Part shown: positions 5,707-37,938 of the stretch, one piece after another | How the letters are laid out: every line of letters begins with the position of its first letter | Numbering within the stretch: position 1 is the stretch's first letter | Virus record (IMG/VR): IMGVR_UViG_3300044712_001255 | Span: 248,001 to 312,000 of that record | Direction: 5' to 3' (one strand) | Length of the DNA stretch: 64,000 bases | Translations under genes and position numbers: made by a program | Notes under the pieces: generated by a model | The model's input: only the letters and a program-made list of their open reading frames with translations | Told to the model about the DNA's origin: nothing | The model's database searches: none

Positions 5707-5712
5707 ATCTAG

Positions 5713-5741
5713 GTGTAGACGTATCACGCGTAATGTATCAT
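5713..5741 (+). promoter_or_regulatory. putative phage promoter GTGTAG-17-TATCAT
   Basis: Recurrent motif; TG extended -10; ATG at 5748. Confidence 0.65.
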
Positions 5742-5747
5742 AAGAAC

Positions 5748-6218
5748 ATGATCAAGCGTTGGTACGCGTTATTGCTTACGTGTGTTGCGTGCGGAAGCGC
5801 TCATCCTTACGACGGGTGGGACGGAGATCCAAATTATCGAGTCGCAGCGCCTGGACAGGGCGGCATGGCAACCGTTGAATACGTACCTGGGCCGTTCTCA
5901 AGATGCTCTCGATACGATTATATCTGCGCGAATGACCCGTCTGGAAAGTTTCATGCGTACAACGGTGATAGAGATCAGGTTGGCGCTGTACTACGTGATC
6001 CAAACGCTTGCGTTTCAATTCGTGCTGTGACACATGAACCGTCAGAGTGTTGCACCCCACTTGGTACGTGCGAAATCAATAAGGCGTTGGGTCTGTGCGG
6101 CACCGGACAGGTATACGTGTTGAACTGCGAGGCTACGAGTGATTTTGCAAAGCAACGTAGTTGTTCTGTGATTCCAAATGGTGGCGTGCCGTTTCCGGCA
6201 CTTTGCTGTACTTTGTAA
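5748..6218 (+). CDS. Cys-rich putative lipoprotein
   Basis: Signal MIKRWYALLLTCVAC with lipobox-like Cys; many further Cys. Confidence 0.55.
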   Translation: MIKRWYALLLTCVACGSAHPYDGWDGDPNYRVAAPGQGGMATVEYVPGPFSRCSRYDYICANDPSGKFHAYNGDRDQVGAVLRDPNACVSIRAVTHEPSECCTPLGTCEINKALGLCGTGQVYVLNCEATSDFAKQRSCSVIPNGGVPFPALCCTL

Positions 6219-6226
6219 GGAACGTA

Positions 6227-6715
6227 ATGATAAAGCTAGACAGTGACAAGCACCTGAACATTAAGATTCGTATCCAAGTCTCTGAGGTTGAGACTGGAAA
6301 ATTCATTGACTCAGATGACGTAGATACCACAATTCCAAGTTACGAAGTTCTTGAGTGGTTCACCAATTATGGACGTGCCATTACCTCCGTCTTCTGCGCG
6401 AAACAAAATGTTGGCATTCGCATAACTGGTCCTGCCGATCGCAAGATATTACAAATCAAGACTCTACGTGAAATGGGTATTGAAGTCGCCGGATACGTGG
6501 GATTGCGTGAAGCGAAGGACGCAATTGAACAAATCGATCGTGGCCCACACATGGTAATCGCAGGATTGTCGACCACGGGTATTGCTCGCATTCAGTCAAT
6601 TGCGCAAGCTGCTGGGGTGTCAATCGAACTTGCTGCGACGACATCAACAATCGCAGAAGGAAGAAATCAACAGCAATCACAATATGTCATCATGCTAACG
6701 GCGAAATCTGAGTGA
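6227..6715 (+). CDS. protein with ribosomal bL12 (L7/L12) C-terminal-like domain
   Basis: KILQIKTLRE...VGLREAKDAIE...AAGVSIEL resembles bL12 CTD KIxVIKxVRE..GLGLKEAKxLVE...EAGAxVEL. Confidence 0.55.
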   Translation: MIKLDSDKHLNIKIRIQVSEVETGKFIDSDDVDTTIPSYEVLEWFTNYGRAITSVFCAKQNVGIRITGPADRKILQIKTLREMGIEVAGYVGLREAKDAIEQIDRGPHMVIAGLSTTGIARIQSIAQAAGVSIELAATTSTIAEGRNQQQSQYVIMLTAKSE

Positions 6716-6740
6716 TGCAAATGCGCCCTGGGATGGTTAT

Positions 6741-6983
6741 TTGTTAACCAAGGGTAAGACAATGTTTGTTGCAGCATCACTAGATAAGAGCCTCAACGAC
6801 CAAATAATCGGTGGTGACGTCGTGCCATGTCCGTTCGATTGCGGCGGCACGCTTTCAGACGAAACGTCGTCAGCACCTATACGAATGATGCCGGCATCTC
6901 GAGCTCGGATGATCACCACTCGGTGTAGCGGATGTAACACGCTTTTTTACGCATGCGTGCCTGTTGCTCGGAGAGCGTCATAA
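6741..6983 (+). CDS. small Zn-ribbon hypothetical protein
   Basis: CPFDC and CSGC pairs. Confidence 0.4.
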   Translation: MLTKGKTMFVAASLDKSLNDQIIGGDVVPCPFDCGGTLSDETSSAPIRMMPASRARMITTRCSGCNTLFYACVPVARRAS

Positions 6984-6985
6984 TC

Positions 6986-7363
6986 ATGCGAGTTGATCTC
7001 ATTTCAATCGTATCGCTCGCTGTTGCGGTACCCTCTGCTGCTGGAGCGGGCATATTTGCCACGCTTGACATGCATCCATTTCTAATCATCGGCACCGCGT
7101 GTTGTGCCGTGGGTGGCATCGCTGTTGCGACGTGGAGATTTGTTTCAACGTCAACTACGTCTAAGTCACCAGCGAAAAAGGTGTTAAGGTGGCGGCGGTC
7201 GTCTCAACGCAAAAGAAAACGCTTGAAGAGCTTTCCAGAAGATATCAGAAACATCAAACCACTTATCAACACGCGGTATAGCTTTCGTGAATCATCCCCA
7301 CCCGAAGAAATGAACGAAGAGTTCAATTCTCAAGGAGACAGAAATAGCGATATTTTTGGGTGA
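6986..7363 (+). CDS. membrane protein, basic C-terminus
   Basis: Two hydrophobic segments then Lys/Arg-rich tail. Confidence 0.45.
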   Translation: MRVDLISIVSLAVAVPSAAGAGIFATLDMHPFLIIGTACCAVGGIAVATWRFVSTSTTSKSPAKKVLRWRRSSQRKRKRLKSFPEDIRNIKPLINTRYSFRESSPPEEMNEEFNSQGDRNSDIFG

Positions 7364-7410
7364 CCAGTGTAAATGTTTGAAACCGTGTATTATTCTATCA
7401 GTCACCTAAA

Positions 7411-7815
7411 ATGAACGAAACACATAACGTATCCGGGCTCATCGCTCGGTTGCATTCAGAAACATCTTTAATCACTTCACGTCCTGGCAATGAACTCGAA
7501 GAGCGCATCATTCGTTGGACTGCATTGAGTCCAAACGTAATGTCATACGAGGTAGACGCAATCAACGTCATGTTGGACGAACTTGTGAAAAATGAGCCAG
7601 ACGTTGGCGTAATGTTCACAGCGTTTGACACGATCAAATTCAGATTTGAACATGGTGAATCACCAGCGGCCGTCTTGCTTGCATGGGAAATGTGCACGCT
7701 GGCGGCTGCAAATACAAGATCAATGTCGGCATTGCGTCTTTGCAGTACCGTGATGTTCAGTACGGTACGCAAGATGCACCAATCCCTACATGATGAGGCA
7801 GGTCGTGCTGCGTGA
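7411..7815 (+). CDS. hypothetical protein
   Basis: ORF downstream of GTGTAA-type promoter at 7367. Confidence 0.5.
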   Translation: MNETHNVSGLIARLHSETSLITSRPGNELEERIIRWTALSPNVMSYEVDAINVMLDELVKNEPDVGVMFTAFDTIKFRFEHGESPAAVLLAWEMCTLAAANTRSMSALRLCSTVMFSTVRKMHQSLHDEAGRAA

Positions 7816-8164
7816 ACAAGATTTCGTTCCAGGCAACGTCATAGTACAACGTATCATGACACGCGTTGTGAAGCATGTCAACAAAAAAGGCAAGCAAAGT
7901 GCTTTGTTTGATATCGACAAACGCGAAAAAATTGAATATGAATACGTTGAAGATGCACGCTTCATGATCATTTCGTGTGTCAAGCAATTCACGCGTCGTC
8001 ACAACAAACACAAGGTCAACACTGGCAGGTGGGAAGTATTTCTAATGCCGCTTGGATGCAAGACTACAGCACCCGTCAAAATGTCATTTTTGTATGGGCG
8101 TCGTAGCGACTCAGCTGTGAATTATGATTATCAACGCCTGAACATTTACGCTTCAAAGAGGTAA
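7790..8164 (+). CDS. hypothetical protein
   Basis: ORF track; true start uncertain. Confidence 0.45.
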   Translation: MMRQVVLREQDFVPGNVIVQRIMTRVVKHVNKKGKQSALFDIDKREKIEYEYVEDARFMIISCVKQFTRRHNKHKVNTGRWEVFLMPLGCKTTAPVKMSFLYGRRSDSAVNYDYQRLNIYASKR

Positions 8165-8174
8165 ATTCCATCTC

Positions 8175-8393
8175 ATGGAAGATGAAGCGCAACGCAAGAA
8201 GGCGTTAGATGACTTTTTAAGTGTGTTCTCTCAGCAACAACGTGAATTTAAGTTCACTGCGCATGACACAAATGAGACGTTTCGGCCGCCGTTAGCAGGC
8301 GATGGCAATGAATGGCAATTTCAGGCATTTCAGGCATCACCTAAAACAACTGGCGTGGGATATGTGCTGTGGTCTAGAATTCGAAAGCCATGA
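8175..8393 (+). CDS. hypothetical protein
   Basis: 72-aa ORF, ATGA overlap with HNH gene. Confidence 0.45.
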   Translation: MEDEAQRKKALDDFLSVFSQQQREFKFTAHDTNETFRPPLAGDGNEWQFQAFQASPKTTGVGYVLWSRIRKP

Positions 8394-8758
8394 GCAAGAA
8401 AAAGGAGAAACGTGTTCCACGTCCTCGAGGTCGTACGTTGGAACAACTTGCAATTCGAATTGCGCAAACTGATAAAACATTCGACGCATTGCCCGATGGG
8501 TGGAGCGGAAAGTGTATTTTTTGTGGTGGCAGAGTGTTTGTGTCATCATCAGGTAAGACGAACGCTACCATAGAACACATAGTACCAGTTTCTGCGGGTG
8601 GGACAAATGATGAACTCAATGTTGCATTAGCTCATAGCTCTTGCAACTCAGAAAAGGGCGTTCGACACGATCCCAACTACCCAAAAGACCCTCGATCTGT
8701 AGAAGTTGTCAATAACCTGCTCCAAAGACGCCAGGAGAGGTTTCGATCTGATATTTAG
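8390..8758 (+). CDS. HNH endonuclease
   Basis: CIFC...TIEHIVPVSAGG..N.ALAHSSCNSEKG. Confidence 0.75.
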   Translation: MSKKKEKRVPRPRGRTLEQLAIRIAQTDKTFDALPDGWSGKCIFCGGRVFVSSSGKTNATIEHIVPVSAGGTNDELNVALAHSSCNSEKGVRHDPNYPKDPRSVEVVNNLLQRRQERFRSDI

Positions 8759-8762
8759 CTGC

Positions 8763-9209
8763 ATGGACAACATTGCGTTGCTGCGGCACATCATTCTCGA
8801 CGAGGCTAAGAAGATTCAAAAGGCGAAGAAAGCCAAGGTGAAGCCTTGGGATGAAGCGCCAACAGGTGAAGGCGAAACCCAAGACATGGGCGATACCAAG
8901 GATGCCAAGGTTGGCGACAAGGCAAAGCAAACTGCTTGGGAAGATGGCAAGCCAAAGGGCAAGCTAAAGGCGACTCGTGCCACCGAGCGTAAACTTACGG
9001 CCGAAGAATTGCGTCGTCTTGTTATTGACGAGGCCAAGAAGGCTAAGGCGGAGAACGCGTCTGTTACGTCAGCCCGCACGCCGTTGGAAGATCCGGATCA
9101 AGTTCCTGAGCTTCCGTGGGAAAAGGGAATGCGTAAGAAGGGCGAGCACAAGCATGCCGTGAAGCAGGAAAGCGTTCTCAAAGGCCTTGCTGATTCGCTA
9201 GAGGAGTGA
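8763..9209 (+). CDS. charged protein with repeated LRxxIxDE motif (putative virion internal protein)
   Basis: LLRHIILDEAKK and ELRRLVIDEAKK; preceded by ATATTTA. Confidence 0.55.
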   Translation: MDNIALLRHIILDEAKKIQKAKKAKVKPWDEAPTGEGETQDMGDTKDAKVGDKAKQTAWEDGKPKGKLKATRATERKLTAEELRRLVIDEAKKAKAENASVTSARTPLEDPDQVPELPWEKGMRKKGEHKHAVKQESVLKGLADSLEE

Positions 9210-9592
9210 TGCAAATCACCCTTGGACAATTAAGAACCATCGTGCGGCGCACGTTGTCCGAGCGCCGCCGTGGACACCGTAGACATCACTCACATTCATC
9301 GCATGGTCATGGTGGATTTGGCCCGGGTGATATCTTCAGCTGGGGATTGTTCGGTGGGTCAAAGGATTACGGTGGTTCTGAACCTGGGAGTTATTCCGGG
9401 GGCGGCTCGTGGGACATGTACGGCGGCTACGGAGACTATGGATATGGAGCGTATGCTTCTGGACACCATTATCACGACCCGCGCACAGACCCTGACGTTC
9501 CGGAGTTCATGAGGCCCTCTGGTGGAGTCACGGCAAGTACACATTCAGATGATTTTATGGATTTTGATGATGATTCTGACGGATTTGACTGA
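9206..9592 (+). CDS. Gly/His/Tyr-rich low-complexity protein with ITLGQLR motif
   Basis: MQITLGQLRTIVRRTLSE then His-rich, GYGDYGYG and acidic tail. Confidence 0.55.
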   Translation: MMQITLGQLRTIVRRTLSERRRGHRRHHSHSSHGHGGFGPGDIFSWGLFGGSKDYGGSEPGSYSGGGSWDMYGGYGDYGYGAYASGHHYHDPRTDPDVPEFMRPSGGVTASTHSDDFMDFDDDSDGFD

Positions 9593-10009: not shown

Positions 10010-10055
10010 CCGGAACTAACGAGTTCTGATGTTCTCTGAAAACTGATCGTTGTAT

Positions 10056-10141
10056 GGATGTGTTGAGCAGGTGGTGAGCTCAGCTGACTGTAAATCAGCC
10101 GCCCGTAACGGGTTTGTCAGGTTCGATTCCTACCGCATCCA
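10056..10141 (+). tRNA. tRNA-Tyr(GTA)
   Basis: GCTGA-CTGTAAA-TCAGC, long variable arm. Confidence 0.9.
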
Positions 10142-10148
10142 CTCATAT

Positions 10149-10231
10149 TCTCGGGTCGGGAAATTGGTATCCCAAGAGATTGTTAATCTCTCGCACGTAA
10201 GTGTATGTAGGTTCGAGCCCTACTCCGAGAG
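10149..10231 (+). tRNA. tRNA-Asn(GTT) with long variable arm
   Basis: AGAGA-TTGTTAA-TCTCT, G73, variable region CGCACGTAAGTGTAT. Confidence 0.85.
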
Positions 10232-10232
10232 C

Positions 10233-10320
10233 GAACTCATAATGCAAGTGCCTGCGTGGAGCAGGAATACTGCAAGTGAAAGGAAGATTAACATACCAAG
10301 TAACACCAAACAGTGGGTTC
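10233..10320 (+). ncRNA. structured RNA with internal GTGAA...AGTAAC helix
   Basis: Closing GAACTC/GGGTTC, hairpin CCTGC/GCAGG, GTGAA 10276 and AGTAAC 10299. Confidence 0.45.
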
Positions 10321-10324
10321 ACAT

Positions 10325-10397
10325 TGCGTAGTAGGCAAATTGGTAAGCCGTGGAGTTGTTACCTCCTTGATTGCGGGTTCGAATCCTGCCTGCGCAG
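10325..10397 (+). tRNA. tRNA-Asn(GTT)
   Basis: TGGAG-TTGTTAC-CTCCT, G73. Confidence 0.85.
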
Positions 10398-10399
10398 CG

Positions 10400-10582
10400 C
10401 CGGATAGTGGTGGGTTCCACTGCGTAAGTGAATGAAGTAACTATGCTAATGCGACGCTTGGGTTCGAGTCCCAACAGGTAACAAATGGGCATAATGGTAA
10501 CGGTTACTGGTTACGCAAAACAAGTTGACTACGAGGGCAAATGTTAGCGTAATCTACTGGGTTCGATTCCCGATAGTCCGCA
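10400..10582 (+). ncRNA. structured RNA with two T-arm-like hairpins
   Basis: GGTTCGAGTCC and GGTTCGATTCC hairpins, GTAAC-TATGC/GCATA-GTTAC and TTACGC/GCGTAA helices; no cloverleaf. Confidence 0.45.
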
Positions 10583-10595
10583 AATCACAATGAAT

Positions 10596-10666
10596 GCCTC
10601 ACTAACATAATGGTAGTGTAACTGGTTCTTACCCAGCTAGTCTCAGTTCGATTCTGGGGTGTGGCA
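10596..10666 (+). tRNA. tRNA-Lys(CTT)
   Basis: ACTGG-TTCTTAC-CCAGC. Confidence 0.85.
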
Positions 10667-10667
10667 C

Positions 10668-10738
10668 TGCGGCGTAGTTCAATGGTAAAACAGCTCGCTC
10701 TGACCGAGTATCTGTAGGTTCAACTCCTACCGCCGCAA
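10668..10738 (+). tRNA. tRNA-Gln(CTG)
   Basis: GCTCG-CTCTGAC-CGAGT. Confidence 0.9.
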
Positions 10739-10741
10739 CGA

Positions 10742-10916
10742 GCCGACAATTCCAGTTTCGAGTACTGGACGCACTTGATAACATTGGCGCTTGAAAGGGC
10801 CCATTCACATTGTCTCGAGCACCAGTGTGATGGGCAGCAAGTACGTAAAACGCCTCACGACATCGTAGAAATAGCAATGAAAACAAAGTGTGTAATGCAA
10901 GTGGTAGCATATCGGC
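10742..10916 (+). ncRNA. circularly permuted tRNA-like RNA, copy 1
   Basis: 3' half 10742-10777 (GCCGA, T arm, CGCACTT-G) precedes 5' half 10886-10916 (AAGTGTG, D arm ATGC/GCAT, TCGGC); all four stems pair. Confidence 0.75.
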
Positions 10917-10924
10917 GTGTTTTT

Positions 10925-10995
10925 TGGAGCATCATCTAATGGCAGGATAGTAGCCTTTGAAGCTATGAATAGGGGTTCGAGTCCCTTTGCTCCAA
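10925..10995 (+). tRNA. tRNA-Gln(TTG)
   Basis: GTAGC-CTTTGAA-GCTAT. Confidence 0.9.
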
Positions 10996-10998
10996 CAA

Positions 10999-11151
10999 GC
11001 CCGAGACCTGGGTTCGAGTCCCAGTTGGACGGTGGCGCTTGAGAGCAAGTCAACGTGCTGATCACACGGAGACATCGCTAGTACGTAAGTCGCCGGCAAT
11101 TGGCTGATCACCTTTTGTCTTGTCCAGTAGTTTAGCGGTCAGAACACGGGC
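10999..11151 (+). ncRNA. circularly permuted tRNA-like RNA, copy 2 (Asp-like scaffold)
   Basis: 3' half 10999-11032 (GCCCG, T arm, TTGGACG-G) precedes 5' half 11121-11151 (TGTCCAG, D arm GTTT/GAAC, CGGGC). Confidence 0.8.
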
Positions 11152-11164
11152 AGTCCTTTCACAT

Positions 11165-11237
11165 GCACTAGTAACTCAATCGGTAGAGTAGACGGCCTTT
11201 AACCGTAAAGTTGAGAGTTCGAGCCTCTCCTGGTGCA
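11165..11237 (+). tRNA. tRNA-Lys(TTT), C33 variant
   Basis: Loop CCTTTAA. Confidence 0.8.
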
Positions 11238-11252
11238 CTTCAACAACGATTT

Positions 11253-11324
11253 GCTTCTGTACGCATCGGGTGAGGCGGGTGGATTGTCAATCCATTGAGG
11301 CGGGTTCGAGTCCCGTCAGAAGCG
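11253..11324 (+). tRNA. tRNA-Asp(GTC)
   Basis: GTGGA-TTGTCAA-TCCAT, G73. Confidence 0.9.
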
Positions 11325-11330
11325 CAATAC

Positions 11331-11403
11331 GTCCCTATAGCTCAACGGATAGAGCGCTTGGCTACGAACCAAGAGGTTGTAAGTTCGAATCTTGCTAGGG
11401 ACG
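11331..11403 (+). tRNA. tRNA-Arg(ACG)
   Basis: CTTGG-CTACGAA-CCAAG. Confidence 0.92.
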
Positions 11404-11404
11404 C

Positions 11405-11478
11405 TGCGGGTTAGAGAAGAGGCCCATCTCACTTGGCTCATAACCAAGAGACCGCCGGTTCGAATCCGGCATCCGCTA
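11405..11478 (+). tRNA. tRNA-Met(CAT), initiator-like
   Basis: CTCATAA loop, 1:72 mismatch; only two G-C pairs at base of anticodon stem. Confidence 0.8.
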
Positions 11479-11479
11479 C

Positions 11480-11554
11480 GACGCTGTAGCTCAAATGCAA
11501 GAGCAGCTGCAATTAAGCAGCAAGATGTTGGTTAAAATCCAGCTGGCGTCACCA
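11480..11554 (+). ncRNA. tRNA-shaped RNA with 6-nt non-canonical anticodon loop and encoded CCA
   Basis: Intact acceptor, D and T stems; GCTGC-AATTAA-GCAGC; ends ACCA. Confidence 0.65.
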
Positions 11555-11555
11555 T

Positions 11556-11631
11556 GGCCTTGTCGTCTATGAATGTAGGACGCCACCCCTTAGTCGAGGT
11601 GGAAAAACAGGTGCGAATACTGTCGAGGCCG
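11556..11631 (+). ncRNA. Glu-like tRNA scaffold with 10-nt anticodon loop
   Basis: GGCCTTG/CGAGGCC acceptor; CCACC-CCTTAGTCGA-GGTGG; degenerate T loop. Confidence 0.55.
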
Positions 11632-11637
11632 CAAATT

Positions 11638-11710
11638 GATTCTGTCGTCTATGAGTAAGACAATCCCAAATTGGTGGGAATAAAAGCTGATTCGTTGTCA
11701 GCCTGGATCA
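11638..11710 (+). ncRNA. tRNA-shaped RNA with non-canonical anticodon loop
   Basis: GTCT/AGAC D stem; TCCCA-AATTGG-TGGGA; GCTGA/TCAGC T stem. Confidence 0.55.
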
Positions 11711-11711
11711 C

Positions 11712-11785
11712 TGGCACATGATGTAGTGGTTTCTGCATGCTGGTCTGATAAATCAGTCGTACGAGTCCGATTCTCGTTGTGCCTA
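11712..11785 (+). tRNA. tRNA-Ile(GAT)
   Basis: CTGGT-CTGATAA-ATCAG; slightly atypical T loop. Confidence 0.75.
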
Positions 11786-11786
11786 C

Positions 11787-11858
11787 GGCCTTGTCGTCTA
11801 TCGGTAGGACAATTGGTTCTCAGCTAATAAAGGACGGGTTCGACTCCCTCCAAGGCTA
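11787..11858 (+). tRNA. tRNA-Glu(CTC)
   Basis: ATTGG-TTCTCAG-CTAAT. Confidence 0.85.
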
Positions 11859-11860
11859 CA

Positions 11861-11967
11861 CTCTTTTGCATTGTGGTCGTGTCTCGACGGGGACCAGCGA
11901 TAGGTTCAAATCCTATCATAAAATTTGGTAGCTGAGCGTTGGTTCGAATCCAACGGGTGTAAAAGAG
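11861..11967 (+). ncRNA. closed RNA with two tandem T arms
   Basis: 10-bp closing stem CTCTTTTGCA/TGTAAAAGAG; ATAGG-TTCAAAT-CCTAT and GTTGG-TTCGAAT-CCAAC. Confidence 0.6.
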
Positions 11968-11973
11968 ATTTTT

Positions 11974-12047
11974 GGTCCCATCTTCTAAATGGTCAGGATA
12001 CTAGACTTTCAATCTGGTAATGGCGAGTTCAAGTCTCCCTGGGATCA
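11974..12047 (+). tRNA. tRNA-Glu(TTC)
   Basis: CTAGA-CTTTCAA-TCTGG. Confidence 0.9.
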
Positions 12048-12133
12048 CCTCGAGTTTCCTTCATGAACTTTGTCGTGCCTGCGTGCGTGGAAAGCGACTA
12101 GATCACCTGGTGACAATCGGGAAAGACCGATAA

Positions 12134-12207
12134 CGGGGTGTACCTCAGTCTGGTAGAGGGCTTGTTTTGGGTACAAGACGTCGCACGTTCGATTCGTGTC
12201 ACCCCGA
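12134..12207 (+). tRNA. tRNA-Pro(TGG)
   Basis: CTTGT-TTTGGGT-ACAAG, C1-G72, A73. Confidence 0.9.
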
Positions 12208-12221
12208 CAACGAAAGATTAC

Positions 12222-12293
12222 ATGCCACTGGTGTTAATGGTAACATGTGGGTTTCCAAGTCCCGTGATGCGCGTTCGATTCGTGCGTGGCATG
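12222..12293 (+). tRNA. tRNA-Trp(CCA) (Gly TCC register less consistent)
   Basis: TGGGT-TTCCAAG-TCCCG, G73. Confidence 0.65.
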
Positions 12294-12360
12294 CTAAACA
12301 AAAATGTGTGATACAAGCTCACACATTAGGAATACAACATACAAACGCAAGGAAAAAGTC

Positions 12361-12876
12361 ATGAATATCAGCCAAGCTCTTCGTCGTATCTCAGTCATTA
12401 AGGGTCAGCTCGCAACCACAGCAACACGTTTCGCCAGTTCAGTCACGTGGATTGATGACGCAAAGCCAACATATTCGCTTGCTGAGTGCGATGTTGCGTG
12501 GGCTCGTCTCGTAGGTGAGCAGACGTCGCTTGAGGCCGCAGTGGCAATTGCCAATGCAACGAACAAGATCACCTATCGTGGTCAGGAATTCACGCTTGCG
12601 TTTGCCGTGAAGCAGTTGGCTGTTTTCAAGGCAAAGATTGCGCTCTTGCGAACCCTGAATTGTCAGGCGACTGCAGAACGCACCGATGTTACTCGTGATA
12701 CTGAGTACGTAAATGGAAATTACGTAACTGTCACTCGAGAGAAGAAGGTTCACTGTGCATTCACTGAGCGTGAGCGTGATACGAGTGTTCAGGTAGCGCA
12801 GACAGACTTTGACGAGCTCAACGCACTCGTCGAGGCGGCAAATCACACCATTCAGGTCGACCCTCAGGTCGTCTGA
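12361..12876 (+). CDS. helical/coiled-coil protein, DIP1984-like
   Basis: MNISQALRRISVIKGQL...IANATN...ELNALVEAAN resembles DIP1984-family pattern (recalled, not searched). Confidence 0.55.
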   Translation: MNISQALRRISVIKGQLATTATRFASSVTWIDDAKPTYSLAECDVAWARLVGEQTSLEAAVAIANATNKITYRGQEFTLAFAVKQLAVFKAKIALLRTLNCQATAERTDVTRDTEYVNGNYVTVTREKKVHCAFTERERDTSVQVAQTDFDELNALVEAANHTIQVDPQVV

Positions 12877-27014: not shown

Positions 27015-27557
27015 ATGGCAAATCAATATTCTAAGTTTAAATGGGAAGATGAACGTCCATTTGAAGATCTGGGCCGAGTAAAACAACGTAACTTCCTAAT
27101 AAAAGAAGCGAATTTTAGTTGTTCTGCTTGCGGCTTCAATAAGTCAAGAGAAGACGGACGATCAATTTTAGAAATTCATCACATCGATGGGAATCATCAA
27201 AATAATGTTCGATCAAATTTGAAAGTGTTATGTCCAAATTGCCATGCCATGACGTTAAAATTCAGATTTTACGGAAAATCACATCTATCGTCAAAAGATC
27301 ATAGAGCTCGAACTATCAATAAAGAGCTCAGAATAAAACGTAAATTAGCGAGAGAACAACGCCAATCAAAAATTAGAGATCAGTTTTGTGAAACGATATT
27401 GTTATGTCATGAGACAAAAGAAATTGATTTCTCTAAATTTGGATGGGTATTACGTCTATCTGAGATGTTTGGCGTAACGCACCAAGCAATTGGTAGACGT
27501 ATAAGAAAATTGATGCCAGAATTCTACAATGATCATTGCTTCAAAAGGAAAGCATAA
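27015..27557 (+). CDS. HNH endonuclease
   Basis: CSAC...LEIHHIDGNHQNN..NLKVLCPNCH. Confidence 0.78.
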   Translation: MANQYSKFKWEDERPFEDLGRVKQRNFLIKEANFSCSACGFNKSREDGRSILEIHHIDGNHQNNVRSNLKVLCPNCHAMTLKFRFYGKSHLSSKDHRARTINKELRIKRKLAREQRQSKIRDQFCETILLCHETKEIDFSKFGWVLRLSEMFGVTHQAIGRRIRKLMPEFYNDHCFKRKA

Positions 27558-27724: not shown

Positions 27725-28042
27725 ATGATAGCACAAAAAGCACGGTTGATGACTAAACTAGTCTCTCTATTGAGAAAGAAGTTGTTTGATAATTCACCTT
27801 TCATTGAAGAGGTGCTCACTCAACTCGACATATTGACTCTCGAGAGAGGCATCAAAGTATGCGTAGAAGATCAGTTGATCGTGGTGTATTTACCAAGCAA
27901 ACCGGGATTCAATCCAATTCCCGTCGCGGCTGGCGTGATGCACCAGGCTGACGTCATTTTTGAATATGAAGCTGGCACGGGACGCATTGTCAAGTGCCTC
28001 AAGCATCGTGAACGTAATCCAGAAGAATTCAATAACGTATGA
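27725..28042 (+). CDS. hypothetical protein
   Basis: 105-aa ORF coupled to next gene. Confidence 0.45.
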   Translation: MIAQKARLMTKLVSLLRKKLFDNSPFIEEVLTQLDILTLERGIKVCVEDQLIVVYLPSKPGFNPIPVAAGVMHQADVIFEYEAGTGRIVKCLKHRERNPEEFNNV

Positions 28043-28443
28043 AAATACTTGTTTGCGGCTCTAGACATTGGGATGACATCGAGACAATTGCGCGTGTGTT
28101 GGAGGGGTTACCCAAATCTGGTGTCACGATAATACATGGGGCGGCTCGAGGGGCTGACATGATAGCCGGAGAGGTGGCCAAGCAGTTTGGATGGAACGTA
28201 CGTGAATACCCGGCGCAGTGGGACAAACACGGTAAAGCTGCTGGACCTCTTAGGAATCAGCTCATGCTTGATCGTGAAAATCTACGAGACAATCCTATTG
28301 AACTGTGCATTGCATTTCATGATGAGTTGCACAAGCAAGAGGGCGGTACTTACGACATGGTGAGACGATCTGCAGCTCTTGGCATACCCGTTAGAAATGT
28401 GAGATCATCAAATGACTCAACAAATAACACGCTTCATCAATGA
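28039..28443 (+). CDS. SLOG-family protein (DUF2493/YspA-like)
   Basis: ILVCGSR, IIHGAARGAD, AAGPLRNQLM, AFH...GGT.DMV. Confidence 0.75.
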   Translation: MKILVCGSRHWDDIETIARVLEGLPKSGVTIIHGAARGADMIAGEVAKQFGWNVREYPAQWDKHGKAAGPLRNQLMLDRENLRDNPIELCIAFHDELHKQEGGTYDMVRRSAALGIPVRNVRSSNDSTNNTLHQ

Positions 28444-28876
28444 GTACGCATTTTTGAGCAGCTTTCATACGTCCACGGTGCGATGGGACGGTAGACTCTG
28501 GAAGTCGGTTGAACACGCGTATCAGGCAGCAAAGACGCTTGATGCCAAACAACGAGACATGATTCAGGCTGCAAAAACTCCTGGCGAAGCAAAGCGGATT
28601 GGGCAAGCTATCACGCTTCGACCTGATTGGGACGACGTAAAGTTGAACATCATGCGTGAATTGATTCATGAAAAGTTTATGAATCCTTTCCTGCGTCACA
28701 GGTTGCTTGAAACGGGTGAAGCAGAGTTGATTGAAATCAACTTTTGGAACGATAAATTTTGGGGCGTCTGTCGCGGTGAAGGAAAAAATCACTTAGGCAG
28801 AATTCTCATGGATGAGCGAGACAGCATACGAGAAGAATTGATCGCAGATAACACCACCGTGGAGGAACTTCGGTAG
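28412..28876 (+). CDS. NADAR family protein (YbiA-like)
   Basis: FLSSF, SVEHAYQAAK, AKRIG, LLETG, DKFWG, GKNHLGRILM. Confidence 0.85.
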   Translation: MTQQITRFINEYAFLSSFHTSTVRWDGRLWKSVEHAYQAAKTLDAKQRDMIQAAKTPGEAKRIGQAITLRPDWDDVKLNIMRELIHEKFMNPFLRHRLLETGEAELIEINFWNDKFWGVCRGEGKNHLGRILMDERDSIREELIADNTTVEELR

Positions 28877-30065: not shown

Positions 30066-30305
30066 ATGGAAAAGAGTAAAAAGCAACAGGATATTGAAGG
30101 CAAGTTGGTGGCGTGGCGTAAGCTTACTCCCGCGGAGCAGCTCGCTGATTTGGACCGTCGCCTCGGTAAGGGCGTTGGCGCCGCAAAGCAGCGCGCTCGC
30201 ATTCAGGCAAAGCTCGATAAGCAGCCCGCCAAGGCTGAGGCGATTGCTACTGACGTTGTCAAGGAGCGTCCTCAGCGCCCGAAGCGGCAGAAGAAGGACA
30301 AGTGA
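30066..30305 (+). CDS. small basic hypothetical protein
   Basis: SD AGGAG; Lys/Arg-rich. Confidence 0.55.
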   Translation: MEKSKKQQDIEGKLVAWRKLTPAEQLADLDRRLGKGVGAAKQRARIQAKLDKQPAKAEAIATDVVKERPQRPKRQKKDK

Positions 30306-31363
30306 CAAATCGATCACTCACTGTCATTCAACAGGGTGCGCTTCGATGTGTCTCTTCTGAGGGATACAACTACACGTTTGATACCGAGACGGGTCGGTTT
30401 GCTCGATGGGGCAAGACTGCTAATGACGATCCCATCATGGCTCCACACCCAGAAATTGCAGATATTGAAGTAACCACTATCTGCGCTGGCGTTGGTGGAA
30501 AGCTGTGTGGGCACTGTTATAAGTCCAACACTCGCAGCGGATCGAACATGTCACTCGATACCTACAAGCGAGTTTTTGATCGCATCGCAGCGTCAGGCAC
30601 TCTCACGCAGGTTGCATTTGGCGCAGACAGCACTGGACGAGCAAATCCTGATCTCATTGAGATGATGAAATACACTCGTTCAAAGGGAGTTGTACCAAAC
30701 ATCACAATTGCCGACATTGATGACGACATGGCCCAGCAACTTGCAAGCGTTTGTGGTGCTGTGGCCGTGAGTCGATATGCTGACAAGAACTATTGCTATG
30801 ATTCTGTGGCGAGGTTGTCAGCAGCTGGTCTCAAGCAGATCAACATTCATTTGATGATCAGCCGCGAGACGTTTGATTGGGCATATGAGACGATCAAGGA
30901 CGTTCATTCTGATCCTCGACTAAAGGGGTTGAAGGCAGTAATCTTGCTGTCTCTCAAGCAAAAAGGTCGGGGAACTCGGTACAACACTCTCGTTCAGTCG
31001 CAGTTCGCAAAGCTTGTGCGAGAGTCCGTGGATTACAACGTTCAAATTGGATTTGACAGTTGCAGTTCATTGAAGTTCTTGAGAACACTCAAGAAGAATC
31101 ATCCGGATTACCCCCGCATCAAGCAGCAGGTCGAGCCGTGTGAAAGCACTCTGTTTTCAGTGTTTGTGAATCACAAGGGTGAGACTTTCCCGTGTTCCTT
31201 CACGGAAGGCACGCCAAATTGGGAAAGCGGAATTGATACACTTGCGTATGATGATTTCAATGATGTGTGGAATCACACCAGGATGCAAGACTTTAGGGCA
31301 AAATTGCTTGCGTCAGACAAGAATGAACATGAATGCCGAGAGTGCACGTTATTCAACGTGTGA
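30302..31363 (+). CDS. radical SAM protein with SPASM/twitch-like C-terminus
   Basis: CX7CX2C (CAGVGGKLCGHC), C..V..GETFPCSF, CREC. Confidence 0.85.
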   Translation: MTNRSLTVIQQGALRCVSSEGYNYTFDTETGRFARWGKTANDDPIMAPHPEIADIEVTTICAGVGGKLCGHCYKSNTRSGSNMSLDTYKRVFDRIAASGTLTQVAFGADSTGRANPDLIEMMKYTRSKGVVPNITIADIDDDMAQQLASVCGAVAVSRYADKNYCYDSVARLSAAGLKQINIHLMISRETFDWAYETIKDVHSDPRLKGLKAVILLSLKQKGRGTRYNTLVQSQFAKLVRESVDYNVQIGFDSCSSLKFLRTLKKNHPDYPRIKQQVEPCESTLFSVFVNHKGETFPCSFTEGTPNWESGIDTLAYDDFNDVWNHTRMQDFRAKLLASDKNEHECRECTLFNV

Positions 31364-31374
31364 AAGAAGGAAAA

Positions 31375-31911
31375 ATGAAGATTAGAGATGGTTTTGTAAG
31401 TAATAGCAGCTCAACGTCGTTCACTTGCTCAGTCACTGGCACAGTCCTCACGGGATATGACGGTGAATATGACGAAGCAATCTGTACTTGTCAGCATTGT
31501 GGTGCTGAATTTCTGGCGTCAGAGTTGTATACTCCCAAGCAACCCACTGAAGAATTTATGAAGATTGCTATTGCTGCTTCACGCAATGAATACGATGAAG
31601 ACGAAGACGACAATGTTGAGTCAAGCGCAATACCTGAGAAGCTGAGCGAACTTAAGAAAGCTTACAAGCTTGCAGTTGACAAGATCAAGTCTGGGAGTGG
31701 GAACACATACGTTCCAAAGGAAATGTGCCCAATTTGCACGCTTGATTACATTGATGATAATGATTTGCTTCATTATTTGATGGCAAAGACAGGCGTAGTT
31801 GACGTCTCTGAGATTTACGATGAGATCAAGGCAACTTTTCAGGACCATGATTTGTTGAAGAATTTTCTTGACACAATTGCAATCAAGAGGAGCAAGAAAG
31901 ATGAAGATTAG
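31375..31911 (+). CDS. MKIRDGFVSNSSSTSF-motif Cys-containing protein, paralog 1
   Basis: Conserved N-terminus plus three Cys pairs. Confidence 0.7.
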   Translation: MKIRDGFVSNSSSTSFTCSVTGTVLTGYDGEYDEAICTCQHCGAEFLASELYTPKQPTEEFMKIAIAASRNEYDEDEDDNVESSAIPEKLSELKKAYKLAVDKIKSGSGNTYVPKEMCPICTLDYIDDNDLLHYLMAKTGVVDVSEIYDEIKATFQDHDLLKNFLDTIAIKRSKKDED

Positions 31912-32437
31912 AGACGGATTTGTAAGTAATAGCAGCTCAACATCATTCACGTGTCAAATTTCCGGGCGTGCGTTAGCCGGTCGAGATGGTGAATATGAGG
32001 AAGGTACGTGTACGTGCATCAAATGTGGCACAGATTTTCTATCTCATTACGCACTTAAAGTTGACATTGATCAACTTTCTATTGCGCAAAAGCGTGACAT
32101 CTTGTCCGTAATGAATGAATCAAACTACGGCGGTGGCGCATTCGAAAATCTTGAAATTGACGATCCCAAGCAGATAATCAACGTGACGGATGATGTGATT
32201 ACGTCAACAATGATCGCCGTCAAGCAACAGATTGAAGATGGATATGAACACACCGACGTACACGAAGTTTTCTGTCCATGCTGCAATTTGACTCACATCA
32301 TTGATGCTGACGTAACTGATTATCTGATGGCAAAGTGCGGTTTCTTCACCAAAGATGCCGTACGAGATGAAATTCGTAGTGTTTTCAACTCACGAGAAAC
32401 ATTGCAAAACTTCACAAAGACAATGTTGCGTAAGTAA
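31901..32437 (+). CDS. MKIRDGFVSNSSSTSF-motif Cys-containing protein, paralog 2
   Basis: Identical first 17 aa to paralog 1, same Cys layout. Confidence 0.7.
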   Translation: MKIRDGFVSNSSSTSFTCQISGRALAGRDGEYEEGTCTCIKCGTDFLSHYALKVDIDQLSIAQKRDILSVMNESNYGGGAFENLEIDDPKQIINVTDDVITSTMIAVKQQIEDGYEHTDVHEVFCPCCNLTHIIDADVTDYLMAKCGFFTKDAVRDEIRSVFNSRETLQNFTKTMLRK

Positions 32438-32570: not shown

Positions 32571-32957
32571 ATGAACGAAGTGAAGCAGGTGATCGTAGTT
32601 CGTAAAGATCTCTCAATGAGGAAAGGAAAAATGTGTTCTCAAGTTGCTCACGCAGCTATGAAGTTCATCCTTGATAACAATGACGCTGATAAAGCGGATA
32701 AAATTCAGGTCGATTTGACGGCGGCCGAGGCAGAATGGGTGAGTGGTACATTCACAAAAATTGTTGTAGGTTGTGATTCTGAGGATGAGCTTGAACAGCT
32801 TATTCTAAAGGCTCAAGTGATGGGCGTCACAGTTCACAAGATCATTGACAATGGCAATACAGAATTTCATGGTGAGAAAACACTGACATGCGCGGCCTTC
32901 GGACCTGCGTATACAGATGAGCTCAATCCAATCACAGGACACCTAAAGTTGCTGTGA
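32571..32957 (+). CDS. pth2: peptidyl-tRNA hydrolase, Pth2 type
   Basis: KQVIVVRKDLSMRKGKMCSQVAHA, KIVV, IDNGNTEF, T..AFGP...ITGHLKLL. Confidence 0.9.
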   Translation: MNEVKQVIVVRKDLSMRKGKMCSQVAHAAMKFILDNNDADKADKIQVDLTAAEAEWVSGTFTKIVVGCDSEDELEQLILKAQVMGVTVHKIIDNGNTEFHGEKTLTCAAFGPAYTDELNPITGHLKLL

Positions 32958-34189: not shown

Positions 34190-34591
34190 ATGGGCGTACC
34201 GACGAGAGACACATTGGTCGAAAATGTAGCGCGGGGATGCTACGAATTGCAACTGATTCAATATGAACTCAAGGGAATTTTTCTGCCGCATTGGGACAAC
34301 AATGATCCCAACCTTGACGCAAGCGCAAGAGCGCTTTTAGAAGCATCAAAGACAGATATGTTGGGATTCACATATGCATCTCTCGCAGGATGGGATCCAA
34401 TACGCCAACACGAATCGTGGTTATTTGATCAGGCAGTTCTTGGATGGACATACGGTGATTCATATGATCCCGTAAATAAAAAAGATCCACGCATGGTTCA
34501 TTGGGATGAGTACCCACAAGAGAAACAAATGGAAATTATGCAAGCGTTCAAGGTGATTCGTACGCTTTGTGCGCTTATTGGACTAATTTAG
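34190..34591 (+). CDS. RyR-domain protein
   Basis: QHESW..GWTYG..YD..KKDPRMVHWDEYP. Confidence 0.65.
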   Translation: MGVPTRDTLVENVARGCYELQLIQYELKGIFLPHWDNNDPNLDASARALLEASKTDMLGFTYASLAGWDPIRQHESWLFDQAVLGWTYGDSYDPVNKKDPRMVHWDEYPQEKQMEIMQAFKVIRTLCALIGLI

Positions 34592-35311: not shown

Positions 35312-35632
35312 ATGTCGAATCGCAAGAAGGAAATAAGAGAAGTATTTCGACAATGCGTTTTTTCTCGAGACAAATTTAGATGTGTGATGTGTGGAATTGC
35401 AGGAACGCAAGATACGCTTGATGCACATCATATTACTGATCGTAAATTGATGCCCAATGGTGGGTATGTTGTTTCAAATGGAATTAGTCTTTGCGCTGAT
35501 TGTCACATAAAGGCTGAAGAATTTCATATATCTGGAGGCGATCATGTTGACATCGGGTGGGCGCCCGTTGACCTTTATAAGAGAATCAACTCTTCATTTC
35601 AAAGAGCATTCATTGATAGCGAAAAATTATGA
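35312..35632 (+). CDS. HNH endonuclease
   Basis: CVMC..LDAHHI..NGISLCADCH. Confidence 0.7.
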   Translation: MSNRKKEIREVFRQCVFSRDKFRCVMCGIAGTQDTLDAHHITDRKLMPNGGYVVSNGISLCADCHIKAEEFHISGGDHVDIGWAPVDLYKRINSSFQRAFIDSEKL

Positions 35633-36126: not shown

Positions 36127-36625
36127 CAATACACCCCCACTCAAGTGCTTCTTTTGCCAATAACTTTGCGCCATTGATGTGAAAGTTATTGTCATCATAG
36201 AATTCCACTTGACGTAGGCCACGTTGCTTGATCAATTGCGCAATATATCGCGCCTTTCCAGGTGGAATGTCTGCTTTCTCGCCGAGTGCCATGACTTCGC
36301 ATCCCGGCATATTGTGCATATCAAGGAACTCCTTGGGTCCATTGGGAGATCCTCGGGCAGTCATCACCATCACGCCTTCAGGACCCAATCGCTTGTATGC
36401 GTCCTTTGCTATGTCGAGAATCTCATCATTCTCGTGAAATTCGGGCGCAAGCGACTGGAATTGACTCATATCGTATGAGTACTGTGTTTCGTCCATGCGA
36501 TGTTCTCGCCATTGTCGAGAATCTAGCCATTGGACCTCACCAGTGTCGAGGTCAGTTACCTTGATGCGTGCATCAGAGACACACAACGTATCATCAAAGT
36601 CGAAAATGTAAAGCTTGTTTGGCAT
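36104..36625 (-). CDS. HAD-superfamily phosphatase (RNA-repair type)
   Basis: IFDFDDTL, VMTAR, K, FYDD. Confidence 0.72.
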   Translation of the reverse strand: MPNKLYIFDFDDTLCVSDARIKVTDLDTGEVQWLDSRQWREHRMDETQYSYDMSQFQSLAPEFHENDEILDIAKDAYKRLGPEGVMVMTARGSPNGPKEFLDMHNMPGCEVMALGEKADIPPGKARYIAQLIKQRGLRQVEFYDDNNFHINGAKLLAKEALEWGCIVNVHLVR

Positions 36626-36702
36626 CTAGCTTACCTAGCAAATCCTATCCCTCTTATACGCGGTGTACTCGAGCGTCATTGTGTGGTAATGTACCTATAA
36701 AT

Positions 36703-37938
36703 ATGGCACACAATATTCCCATAGTGATCGAATACTTGAAGACCCACTCTCTCCAGGAGCTGGAGGATGAGCATGGCGTCAAAGCTCGTCCTGACGCGGC
36801 GAACACCAAGTTTAGCCTAAATTACGATCAATTGGCTATCAAGGGCGGTGACAAGCTTGCTGAGCAGTGCCGCGGTATGGTTGTTCGTCCAATCAATGTT
36901 GCAACTTCTGGCGCATCATTTGATTGGGAAAAGCTACGTTCTGCACCCGTTGGCGAGTGCGTTGTCCTGTGTCGGCCAATGGATCGATTCTACAATGACG
37001 GTGATTTCTACGCCGCAAAGATAGACTATGATTCTGCCGTCGTGTATGAGAAGCTCGACGGTACTATGATGGCTGCATATTGGGACCCGCTCAAGGCTGC
37101 ATGGCACACCGCAACTCGATCAATTCCTGAGGCTGACCTGCCAATTCGGTTGGGAGACTTGGTGTTGGAAGATACCACGTTCCGTGGTCTGTTCGATCAG
37201 GCATTGGAATACATGATTAATGGTGAACGTGATCCAATGTTTCCAAATGCAATGACGTGGTGGAATCGACTCAACAAGCAATACACCTATGTCTTTGAAC
37301 TGACGAGCCCATTGAATCGTGTAGTTGTGCAGTATGACGAACCACGTATTACTGCGATCGCTTGTCGAGATAACGTATCTGGTCGTGAATGTCTCACTGG
37401 TATGTATCAACTCTGGCCTCGCCCTCGCACGTGGAAGCTCAATGACACTCATGCTATTAAGGCATTGGCGGATTCATTCTCTCCCGCTGAGTTGGAGGGG
37501 TTTGTAGTGTGTGATGTTCATTTCAAACGCGTCAAGATCAAGAATGCTGCATACGTCTTGGCACACCACGCCAAGGATGGCATCGTGTCTTCAAAGCGCA
37601 ATGCGCTTGTCGCAGCATTCAAGGGAATCCTTGATGACGTCATGCCCATGGTCGATCCTGCAACGCGAAAGGCAATGGAGGAACTGCAATTTGCTGTTGG
37701 CAAGTTCATCAAGGAGAGCGAAGCAAAGTACGCAGATTGGGCATCGCAGTGCGAACCCGGTGACAACAAGACGTTTGCGTCCTTTGTGAGCGCAAATCAA
37801 CCCGTGTTGTCGTCAGCGTACTATGCCGTGTTCCGCGGCAAGAGCAAGACCATCGGAGAATACATGACTCAACACATTGGCGAAGGAATGATTGGCGACA
37901 AGGCACTCGACAATATTCTTACCTACTTGAAGGTGTGA
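36703..37938 (+). CDS. T4 Rnl1-like RNA ligase
   Basis: EKLDGT (motif I), HTATR, YVFELTSP, EGFVV, VKIKN; start re-assigned to MAHNIP. Confidence 0.8.
   Translation: MAHNIPIVIEYLKTHSLQELEDEHGVKARPDAANTKFSLNYDQLAIKGGDKLAEQCRGMVVRPINVATSGASFDWEKLRSAPVGECVVLCRPMDRFYNDGDFYAAKIDYDSAVVYEKLDGTMMAAYWDPLKAAWHTATRSIPEADLPIRLGDLVLEDTTFRGLFDQALEYMINGERDPMFPNAMTWWNRLNKQYTYVFELTSPLNRVVVQYDEPRITAIACRDNVSGRECLTGMYQLWPRPRTWKLNDTHAIKALADSFSPAELEGFVVCDVHFKRVKIKNAAYVLAHHAKDGIVSSKRNALVAAFKGILDDVMPMVDPATRKAMEELQFAVGKFIKESEAKYADWASQCEPGDNKTFASFVSANQPVLSSAYYAVFRGKSKTIGEYMTQHIGEGMIGDKALDNILTYLKV

Follow-up and report, generated by a model that had tools for sequence, protein, structure and literature searches.

The 64,000-nucleotide stretch of a jumbo phage genome analyzed here (the window; positions 248,001 to 312,000 of IMG/VR record IMGVR_UViG_3300044712_001255) encodes a radical-SAM (rSAM) enzyme followed by two proteins that start with the same serine-rich sequence, raising the question of whether the shared N-terminus is a site on which the enzyme acts. 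A first-pass annotation of the sequence had proposed that the serine-rich segment may be a modification site that matures these two proteins. The analysis presented here confirms the observation and supports the proposed interpretation, though in the absence of mass or activity data any modification of the tag remains an inference. Importantly, the pair of proteins is a small sample of a much larger system, for which no description was found in the literature searched, and a reading restricted to the maturation of two proteins understates that system.

The radical-SAM gene and its two neighbors

The rSAM gene (30302-31363, + strand) encodes a protein of 353 aa belonging to the unnamed family phrog_7293 (E 6.9e-114). 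The cluster motif, C61-x7-C69-x2-C72, is followed by a conserved YKSN (30482-30517, + strand), and C69, C72, Y73, K74, and N76 are invariant among homologs. CX7CX2C, noted in the first-pass annotation, is a recorded variant of the rSAM motif (PMC9477430, PMC5682303) and in this family is a lineage-specific loop insertion, as homologs have CX3, CX6, CX7, CX9, or CX12 before CX2C. The protein has no hit to the Pfam rSAM model (PF04055) at E<=1, though a distant homolog does (51.5 bits), and the missing match most likely reflects the loop insertion and divergence of the window protein rather than non-membership in the superfamily. The AF2 model (pLDDT 90.9, pTM 0.90) matches 446 PDB chains at E<=1e-3, nearly all of the listed hits being rSAM enzymes, and the top Foldseek hits are SuiB, SkfB, CteB, PqqE, TigE, and anSME.

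The N-terminal extension (residues 1-45; 30302-30436, + strand) is predicted to be all-beta, with strands at residues 7-11, 14-19, 22-27, and 33-36, and holds the conserved motif YNYxF...TGxFxRWG, in which F26, G31, W36, and G37 are invariant and Y22, N23, F33, and R35 are nearly invariant. The C-terminal region (31061-31345, + strand) is an auxiliary Fe-S (SPASM/twitch-like) region, with a Pfam SPASM (PF13186) hit to residues 280-349 (30.8 bits, cut-off 21.5), while TIGR04085 scored below its cut-off (21.4 versus 27). The first-pass annotation described this tail as SPASM-like, but only four of its Cys (C254, C280, C298, and C348) are invariant across 30 homologs, and the tail therefore looks like a one-cluster, twitch-like domain rather than a full seven-Cys SPASM with two auxiliary clusters. 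A PDB sequence-profile search provided a weak match to the BtrN twitch domain (E 1e-3) and to SkfB, in addition to spurious PPR-repeat hits. No curated rSAM family reaches its cut-off, thus the chemistry cannot be transferred by homology.

The two downstream genes, A (31375-31911, + strand) and B (31901-32437, + strand), each encode a protein of 178 aa, are 41% identical overall, and share Cys18, 39, 42, 118, and 121. The conserved start of gene A is the ATG at 31375, not the upstream ATG at 31333, and the start of gene B, at 31901, overlaps the end of gene A by 11 nt; each start has a Shine-Dalgarno-like purine run just upstream. Residues 1-18 (MKIRDGFVSNSSSTSFTC) are identical in the two proteins. 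As the first-pass annotation stated, the first 16 codons have exactly 4 differences (D5, G6, T14, and S15), all synonymous, and codons 17 and 18 also differ only synonymously. The tag proper comprises residues 1-17 (MKIRDGFVSNSSSTSFT) and lies at 31375-31425 in gene A and 31901-31951 in gene B, both on the + strand. Beyond the tag, protein A consists of a Cys-rich (zinc-ribbon-like) helical domain. This is the commonest class of tagged protein, with the family profile identifying 2033 cluster representatives at E<=1e-3. The AF2 model of protein A has a pLDDT of 90, but only 58 for residues 1-10, such that the model does not pack the start of the tag into the fold. No Pfam family was identified for protein A, and fold searches against PDB and BFVD returned only generic zinc-finger noise. 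Further, a feature search of the Atlas returned only unnamed viral clusters, and PADLOC had no hit for the window proteins.

Distribution of the tag and its coupling to the enzyme

In IMG/VR phage contigs, the tag MKIRxGFVSNSSSSSF starts 469 non-redundant ORFs on the seed strand of 150 related loci, compared to 1 loose match on the opposite strand. The tagged proteins have a median length of 131 aa and occur in same-strand arrays of up to 13 genes, usually directly after a homolog of the rSAM. Beyond the tag, the proteins form 120 BLAST families, and all hhalign probabilities among the ten largest are below 28%. The tag itself is selected as a peptide: 464 of the 469 tags begin at a start codon exactly at tag residue 1, the Ser positions use both AGY and TCN codons, and paralog tags within a locus differ at 7247 synonymous versus 2407 nonsynonymous codons. 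These codon data argue against recent duplication or gene conversion as the cause of tag identity.

The tag and the enzyme co-occur in both directions. At least 66 of 80 rSAM-seeded loci carry 1-13 tags within 10 kb, all on the strand of the enzyme and none on the other, and two loci (L089 and L090) also carry a variant tag missed by the search pattern. From the opposite direction, 44 of 71 tag-seeded loci carry the rSAM within 6 kb, and the rSAM is the only non-tag protein family that recurs around tag genes. Of the 27 tag contigs without a nearby rSAM, 9 carry one elsewhere, including 4 of the 4 contigs that are at least 90% complete, while 18 incomplete contigs show no rSAM. Motif proteins usually occurring without the enzyme, one part of the result that the first-pass annotation had named as refuting its proposal, was not found.

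Cultured phages RB16/RB43, KP15/KP27, and Vibrio phage D479 have both components. Vibrio phage D479 has the rSAM and 3 tags within 9 kb on the same strand, but in RB16 and KP27 the two tag genes are about 20 kb from the enzyme, indicating that operon-level coupling is not universal. In the phage database, the rSAM is present in 172 records and the two tag proteins in 175 and 174, from the same genera, though this matching phylogenetic profile comes from one clade and is confounded by descent. Neither a megablast of the region nor tblastn of protein A and of a typical zinc-ribbon member identified a match among cultured phages; the zinc-ribbon class seems absent from cultured phages, but other tag classes are present. 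A 'conserved N-terminal motif' described for RaK2 is a different, tail-spike motif.

Predicted docking and proposed function of the tag

The predicted complex of the enzyme and protein A had ipSAE scores of 0.80, 0.80, and 0.70, compared to 0.00 for the best of 3 controls. The mark was reached by 58 of 80 solved complexes and 2 of 110 mismatched pairs, the runs agree in at least 78% of contacts, and the partner pLDDT is at least 72. It should be noted that this score is the confidence of the model itself and that the prediction used custom alignments and riding ligands not covered by the calibration. The partner interface is limited to residues 1-28, which touch enzyme residues 30-37 and residues of the barrel and auxiliary-cluster domain (103-107, 131-135, 152-155, 179-183, 248-254, 280-282, and 298-300). 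Tag residues 2-7 pair with the conserved N-terminal strand of the enzyme (lowest-error contacts 35:2, 34:3, 33:4, and 31:6), and the Ser run lies against residues of the barrel and the auxiliary-cluster domain.

Taken with the genomic coupling, the favored explanation, held with moderate confidence, is a two-component phage system in which an rSAM enzyme with a single auxiliary Fe-S cluster modifies the tag at the start of a set of client proteins, which in this phage are A, B, and a third tag protein 176 kb away. In the proposed mechanism, tag residues 2-7 dock as an extra beta-strand on the N-terminal sheet (TGxFxRWG), threading the conserved V-S-N-S-S-S-S-S-F stretch into the barrel next to SAM and the auxiliary cluster, although the prediction does not report which tag residue faces SAM. 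The 5'-deoxyadenosyl radical would then abstract a hydrogen from a tag residue and the auxiliary cluster would take up the electron, for a net two-electron oxidation. The likeliest products, inferred rather than observed, are a Ser alcohol oxidized to an aldehyde (formylglycine-type, as anSME does to Ser and BtrN to an alcohol) or an intra-tag cross-link such as Phe7 to Ser9, either of which would give about -2 Da per event. The modified tag would be a common functional handle on many unrelated, mostly acidic, small accessory proteins.

The nearest structures to the enzyme are peptide or protein maturases. RiPP maturases of the SPASM/twitch group (SuiB, CteB, SkfB, and PqqE) are the best structural matches (Foldseek E about 1e-8 to 1e-9, TM up to 0.70 to SuiB) and share the C-terminal auxiliary Fe-S domain. 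The predicted strand addition to an N-terminal recognition element, here a four-strand all-beta extension, resembles the way in which leader peptides probably bind in CteB-type enzymes. However, the clients in this viral system are full-length proteins of 80-200 aa from about 120 families rather than one short precursor, and no protease or exporter is linked. The anaerobic sulfatase-maturating enzyme (anSME/AtsB), which modifies a Ser or Cys in a conserved motif of a folded protein client, is also a structural neighbor (4k36-4k39), but it has two auxiliary clusters, its client motif (C/S)xPxR is absent from the tag, and no anSME model was among the NCBIfam hits. An anSME-type mechanism is not supported as a family assignment. 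The tag also contains the string F-V-S-N-S, reminiscent of the FxSxx peptides paired with an rSAM-SPASM gene beside STAND/AP-ATPase conflict systems (Kaur et al. 2020, PMC7159879), and one bacterial tag-rSAM pair lies in an operon with a SMEK-NACHT (Avs2-like) protein. In Fxs, the motif is at the extreme C-terminus of a short peptide, while here it is at residues 7-11 of proteins, and no FxsB model hit was found for four family members or the window protein; the resemblance to FxsB and the triceptide systems is a lead only. The tag is not consistent with a glycyl-radical site and its activase, as R-x-G-F has the wrong spacing relative to RVxG[FY], G6 is only 88-93% conserved (replaced by D, S, or C), and the enzyme has a C-terminal Fe-S domain.

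Alternative roles and implications for phage biology

An alternative, considered unlikely but the likeliest of those examined, is that the tag is a docking handle and not a substrate, with the rSAM protein acting as a hub that binds tagged adaptors or regulators while its chemistry acts on a small molecule, a nucleic acid, or another part of the client. The best-defined contacts are indeed those of the strand pairing between tag residues 2-7 and enzyme residues 30-36, the clients are very diverse, and in the window the enzyme occurs in a tRNA, RNA-repair, and NAD-related neighborhood, with 45 tRNAs nearby. However, the most conserved part of the tag is the Ser run (N10, S11, and S12 are about 100% conserved), which the model places against barrel residues, and not the docking strand alone. 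Further, tRNAs are near the enzyme in only 23 of 80 loci, compared to at least 66 of 80 for tags, and no third conserved partner was identified.

It is less likely still that the tag is a targeting signal unrelated to the enzyme (e.g., for capsid targeting, export, injection, or stability) and that the rSAM merely shares the same hyperplastic accessory region. Diverse T4-type internal proteins, encoded in variable regions of T4-like genomes, probably share a short N-terminal capsid-targeting sequence in a comparable manner, the tagged proteins are small, acidic, and variable, like injected or early accessory proteins, and one RB16 tag protein weakly matches a PHROG annotated as head-tail adaptor. 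Without a virion proteome to consult, the case against this role rests on the coupling to the rSAM in both directions and in independent lineages, the complex controls (0.00), the lack of the Glu-containing prohead-protease site of the T4 signal, and the absence of a capsid or protease gene recurring next to the arrays. Similarly doubtful is a RiPP-like system in which the modified tag is cut off as the product, for while the closest structures are RiPP maturases and the tag is short, extremely conserved, and predicted to be flexible, no protease or exporter recurs in the neighborhood, up to 13 different full-length carriers per phage for one identical peptide is hard to explain, and the carriers are themselves conserved families (about 2000 cluster representatives for the zinc-ribbon class alone).

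A broader interpretation, which is about as likely as not, is that phages have a general protein-tagging system in which one rSAM enzyme installs a single, as yet unknown, post-translational modification on a universal 17-residue N-terminal tag carried by more than a hundred unrelated families of small acidic accessory proteins, up to 13 per genome. The modified tag would provide a shared property, such as a reactive group, protection from proteolysis, or targeting, for use in phage-host conflict, with the same pair occasionally found in bacterial defense islands. rSAM maturases are known to act on one peptide or one protein class, while here a single enzyme appears to serve a portable tag that evolution has attached to many unrelated proteins, in phages from soil, water, and clinical collections. 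If confirmed, the system could supply a short, genetically encodable tag-and-enzyme pair for protein engineering, and it would define a new post-translational modification in viruses and give a first functional handle on hundreds of phage genes of unknown function (phrog_7293, phrog_7397, and many ORFans).

Genomic setting and the radical-SAM family

The 324-kb IMG/VR phage record that contains the window (bases 248001-312000) is estimated to be 86% complete. A total of 45 tRNA genes on the + strand, covering most amino acids and with several duplicated, occur at 9926-35308 of the window. The genes around the radical-SAM (rSAM) locus are accessory genes, and the tRNAs are interleaved with HNH endonucleases (27015-27557 and 35312-35632), a YAcAr/SLOG protein (28039-28443), a NADAR protein (28412-28876), PTH2 (32571-32957), a RyR-domain protein (34190-34591), and a T4-type RNA-ligase-like gene (36568-37938). 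The region looks like a translation and RNA-repair island of a jumbo phage. The open reading frames are as described in the first-pass annotation, which had identified an rSAM gene followed by two proteins with a shared Ser-rich N-terminus. The rSAM gene (30302-31363, 353 aa) has C61-x7-C69-x2-C72 and a Pfam SPASM hit above the cut-off, and belongs to phrog_7293, which is annotated as 'unknown function' (E 6.9e-114). Genes A (31375-31911) and B (31901-32437) encode 178-aa paralogs that are 41% identical, with first 18 residues that are identical and differ only at synonymous sites.

An alignment of 30 homologs of the enzyme revealed a conserved N-terminal motif (YNYxF...TGxFxRWG), C69, C72 and the following YKSN, and four further Cys (C254, C280, C298, and C348). 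The spacer before CX2C is 3, 6, 7, 9, or 12 residues in different members, and the 'atypical' CX7 noted in the first-pass annotation is therefore a loop insertion in an otherwise ordinary cluster motif. CX7CX2C has been recorded before in other rSAM groups. The four conserved Cys fit one auxiliary cluster (twitch-like) and not the two of a full SPASM domain. The AF2 model is confident (pLDDT 90.9) and shows a predicted four-strand N-terminal sheet in front of the barrel. The nearest solved structures are peptide or protein maturases (SuiB, SkfB, CteB, PqqE, TigE, and anSME), but by sequence no curated family reaches its cut-off and matches to the PDB are marginal. In several phages (L019 6496-8810, L025 2546-4304, L031 1954-3878, G027 10027-12078, and Cronobacter phage leB, in 2 pieces), the rSAM gene is split into two ORFs separated by 0.3-1 kb, which could be the result of an inserted homing endonuclease, intron, or intein. 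In Vibrio phage D479, a homing endonuclease lies directly after the gene (10100-10828 of its locus, L175).

A shared N-terminal tag on many protein families

While a word search found only 6 relatives of protein A, a profile search of 1.84 billion representatives found 2033, all of which begin with MK[IV]RxGFVSNSSSSSF at residue 1. Proteins A and B (31375-32437) belong to a minority branch of this zinc-ribbon class that lacks the C21, H44, and C47 usual for the family and has C37/C39/C42 instead, and the metal site seems to have been rebuilt in this branch. Scanning IMG/VR with the profile gave 70 loci, in which many neighboring ORFs matched only over the first 17-20 positions. Inspection of these ORFs revealed tandem, same-strand arrays in which each gene starts with the same tag and continues with unrelated sequence, with up to 13 such genes in one locus (L056) and 11 each in three others (L012, L045, and L072). 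Over 150 loci, 469 non-redundant tagged ORFs were counted on the seed strand, compared to 1 loose match on the other strand. Of the 469, 464 start at ATG, GTG, or TTG exactly at tag residue 1, and the median length is 131 aa.

After removal of the tag, 453 tails fall into 120 BLAST families, 83 of which are singletons, and 93% of tails are acidic (median net charge of -9). Profile-profile comparisons among the ten largest families gave no probability above 28%. The tag is held constant at the protein level: Ser positions use both AGY and TCN codons, Arg uses AGA and CGN, and paralog tags within a locus differ at 7247 synonymous against 2407 nonsynonymous codons.

Genomic coupling and predicted docking of tag and enzyme

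Around tag genes, the only recurrent non-tag family is the rSAM, which occurs within 6 kb in 44 of 71 loci. Of the 27 other contigs, 9 carry the rSAM elsewhere, including all 4 that are at least 90% complete, and most of those without it are under 60% complete. In the reverse direction, 66 of 80 loci seeded by the enzyme alone carry 1-13 strict tags within 10 kb, always on the strand of the enzyme and mostly starting right after its stop codon. Two of the 14 apparent negatives have a variant tag that was missed by the search pattern, while others are RB16-type genomes. tRNAs accompany the enzyme in only 23 of the 80 loci. The genome containing the window has a third tag gene (86 aa, tag MKTRGGFVSNSSSCSF) at record position 102486-102746 (987-1247 of its locus, L176), 176 kb from the enzyme and directly after a 320-aa ORF.

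Among cultured phages, RB16 and KP27 have the enzyme and two tag genes about 20 kb away, which in RB16 are RB16p106 and RB16p111, the latter being phrog_7397. The tail of RB16p106 (RB16 record 66610-67077; 2111-2578 of its locus, L081) matches phrog_132, annotated as 'head-tail adaptor' (E 3.3e-10, residues 64-147), and if the match is real, at least one tagged protein could be virion-associated. In the phage database, the enzyme is in 172 records and the two tag proteins are in 175 and 174, from the same genera, though these represent one clade and the agreement is weak as independent evidence. Vibrio phage D479, a separate lineage, has the enzyme and three tag genes within 9 kb on the same strand. 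Among 185,579 species genomes, the tag pattern matched only 125 stretches, and the 13 confirmed loci are all in metagenome-assembled genomes (MAGs), so the system is essentially viral.

The enzyme alignment, SAM, two 4Fe-4S clusters, and the protein A alignment were folded together, resulting in ipSAE values of 0.80, 0.80, and 0.70, compared to 0.00 for the best of 3 controls. The mark was reached by 58 of 80 solved complexes and 2 of 110 mismatched pairs, the runs agree in at least 78% of contacts, and partner pLDDT is at least 72. It should be noted that the calibration did not cover custom alignments or riding ligands, and that the model supports binding but does not show it. In the model, the interface of the partner consists of residues 1-28 only. 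Residues 2-7 pair with enzyme residues 30-36, and the rest touches residues of the barrel and the auxiliary-cluster domain, including N133, N181, H183, D252-C254, C280-S282, and C298-F300, many of which are invariant. On its own, protein A is predicted to fold well (pLDDT 90), but its first 10 residues have low confidence, and its fold has no known match.

Possible chemistry and role of the pair

The evidence supports a functional pair in which the tag is recognized by the enzyme, and the most economical reading is that the tag is also modified by the enzyme. A single fully Cys-ligated auxiliary cluster, as in BtrN, suits a net two-electron oxidation, which points to Ser-to-aldehyde oxidation or an intra-tag cross-link, though none of this chemistry has been shown. 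The FxSxx string in the tag recalls the Fxs peptides that Kaur et al. (PMC7159879) found next to rSAM-SPASM genes in conflict systems, but no FxsB model matches.

No paper, Pfam family, or NCBIfam model was found for the tag or for the pairing, though the literature searched was incomplete and a prior description cannot be excluded, and PHROGs list both parts as 'unknown function'. The general principle of an rSAM maturase with a ribosomal client is known, while the new elements are a portable N-terminal tag shared by many protein families, the gene arrays, and the viral setting.

The clients look like typical small acidic phage accessory proteins. In one Acidobacteriota MAG (1.47-Mb contig; 4736-9502 of locus L174), four overlapping same-strand genes encode a SMEK-NACHT NTPase with PADLOC Avs2-like matches, a 128-aa ORF, a 137-aa tag protein, and an rSAM homolog with a canonical CX3CX2C motif and a longer Cys-rich tail. 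A possible integrase-type gene, judged by eye only, lies nearby (10472-12646). The presence of a tag-plus-enzyme pair in an operon with this NTPase hints at a role in conflict, and the pair may also work inside bacterial defence islands.
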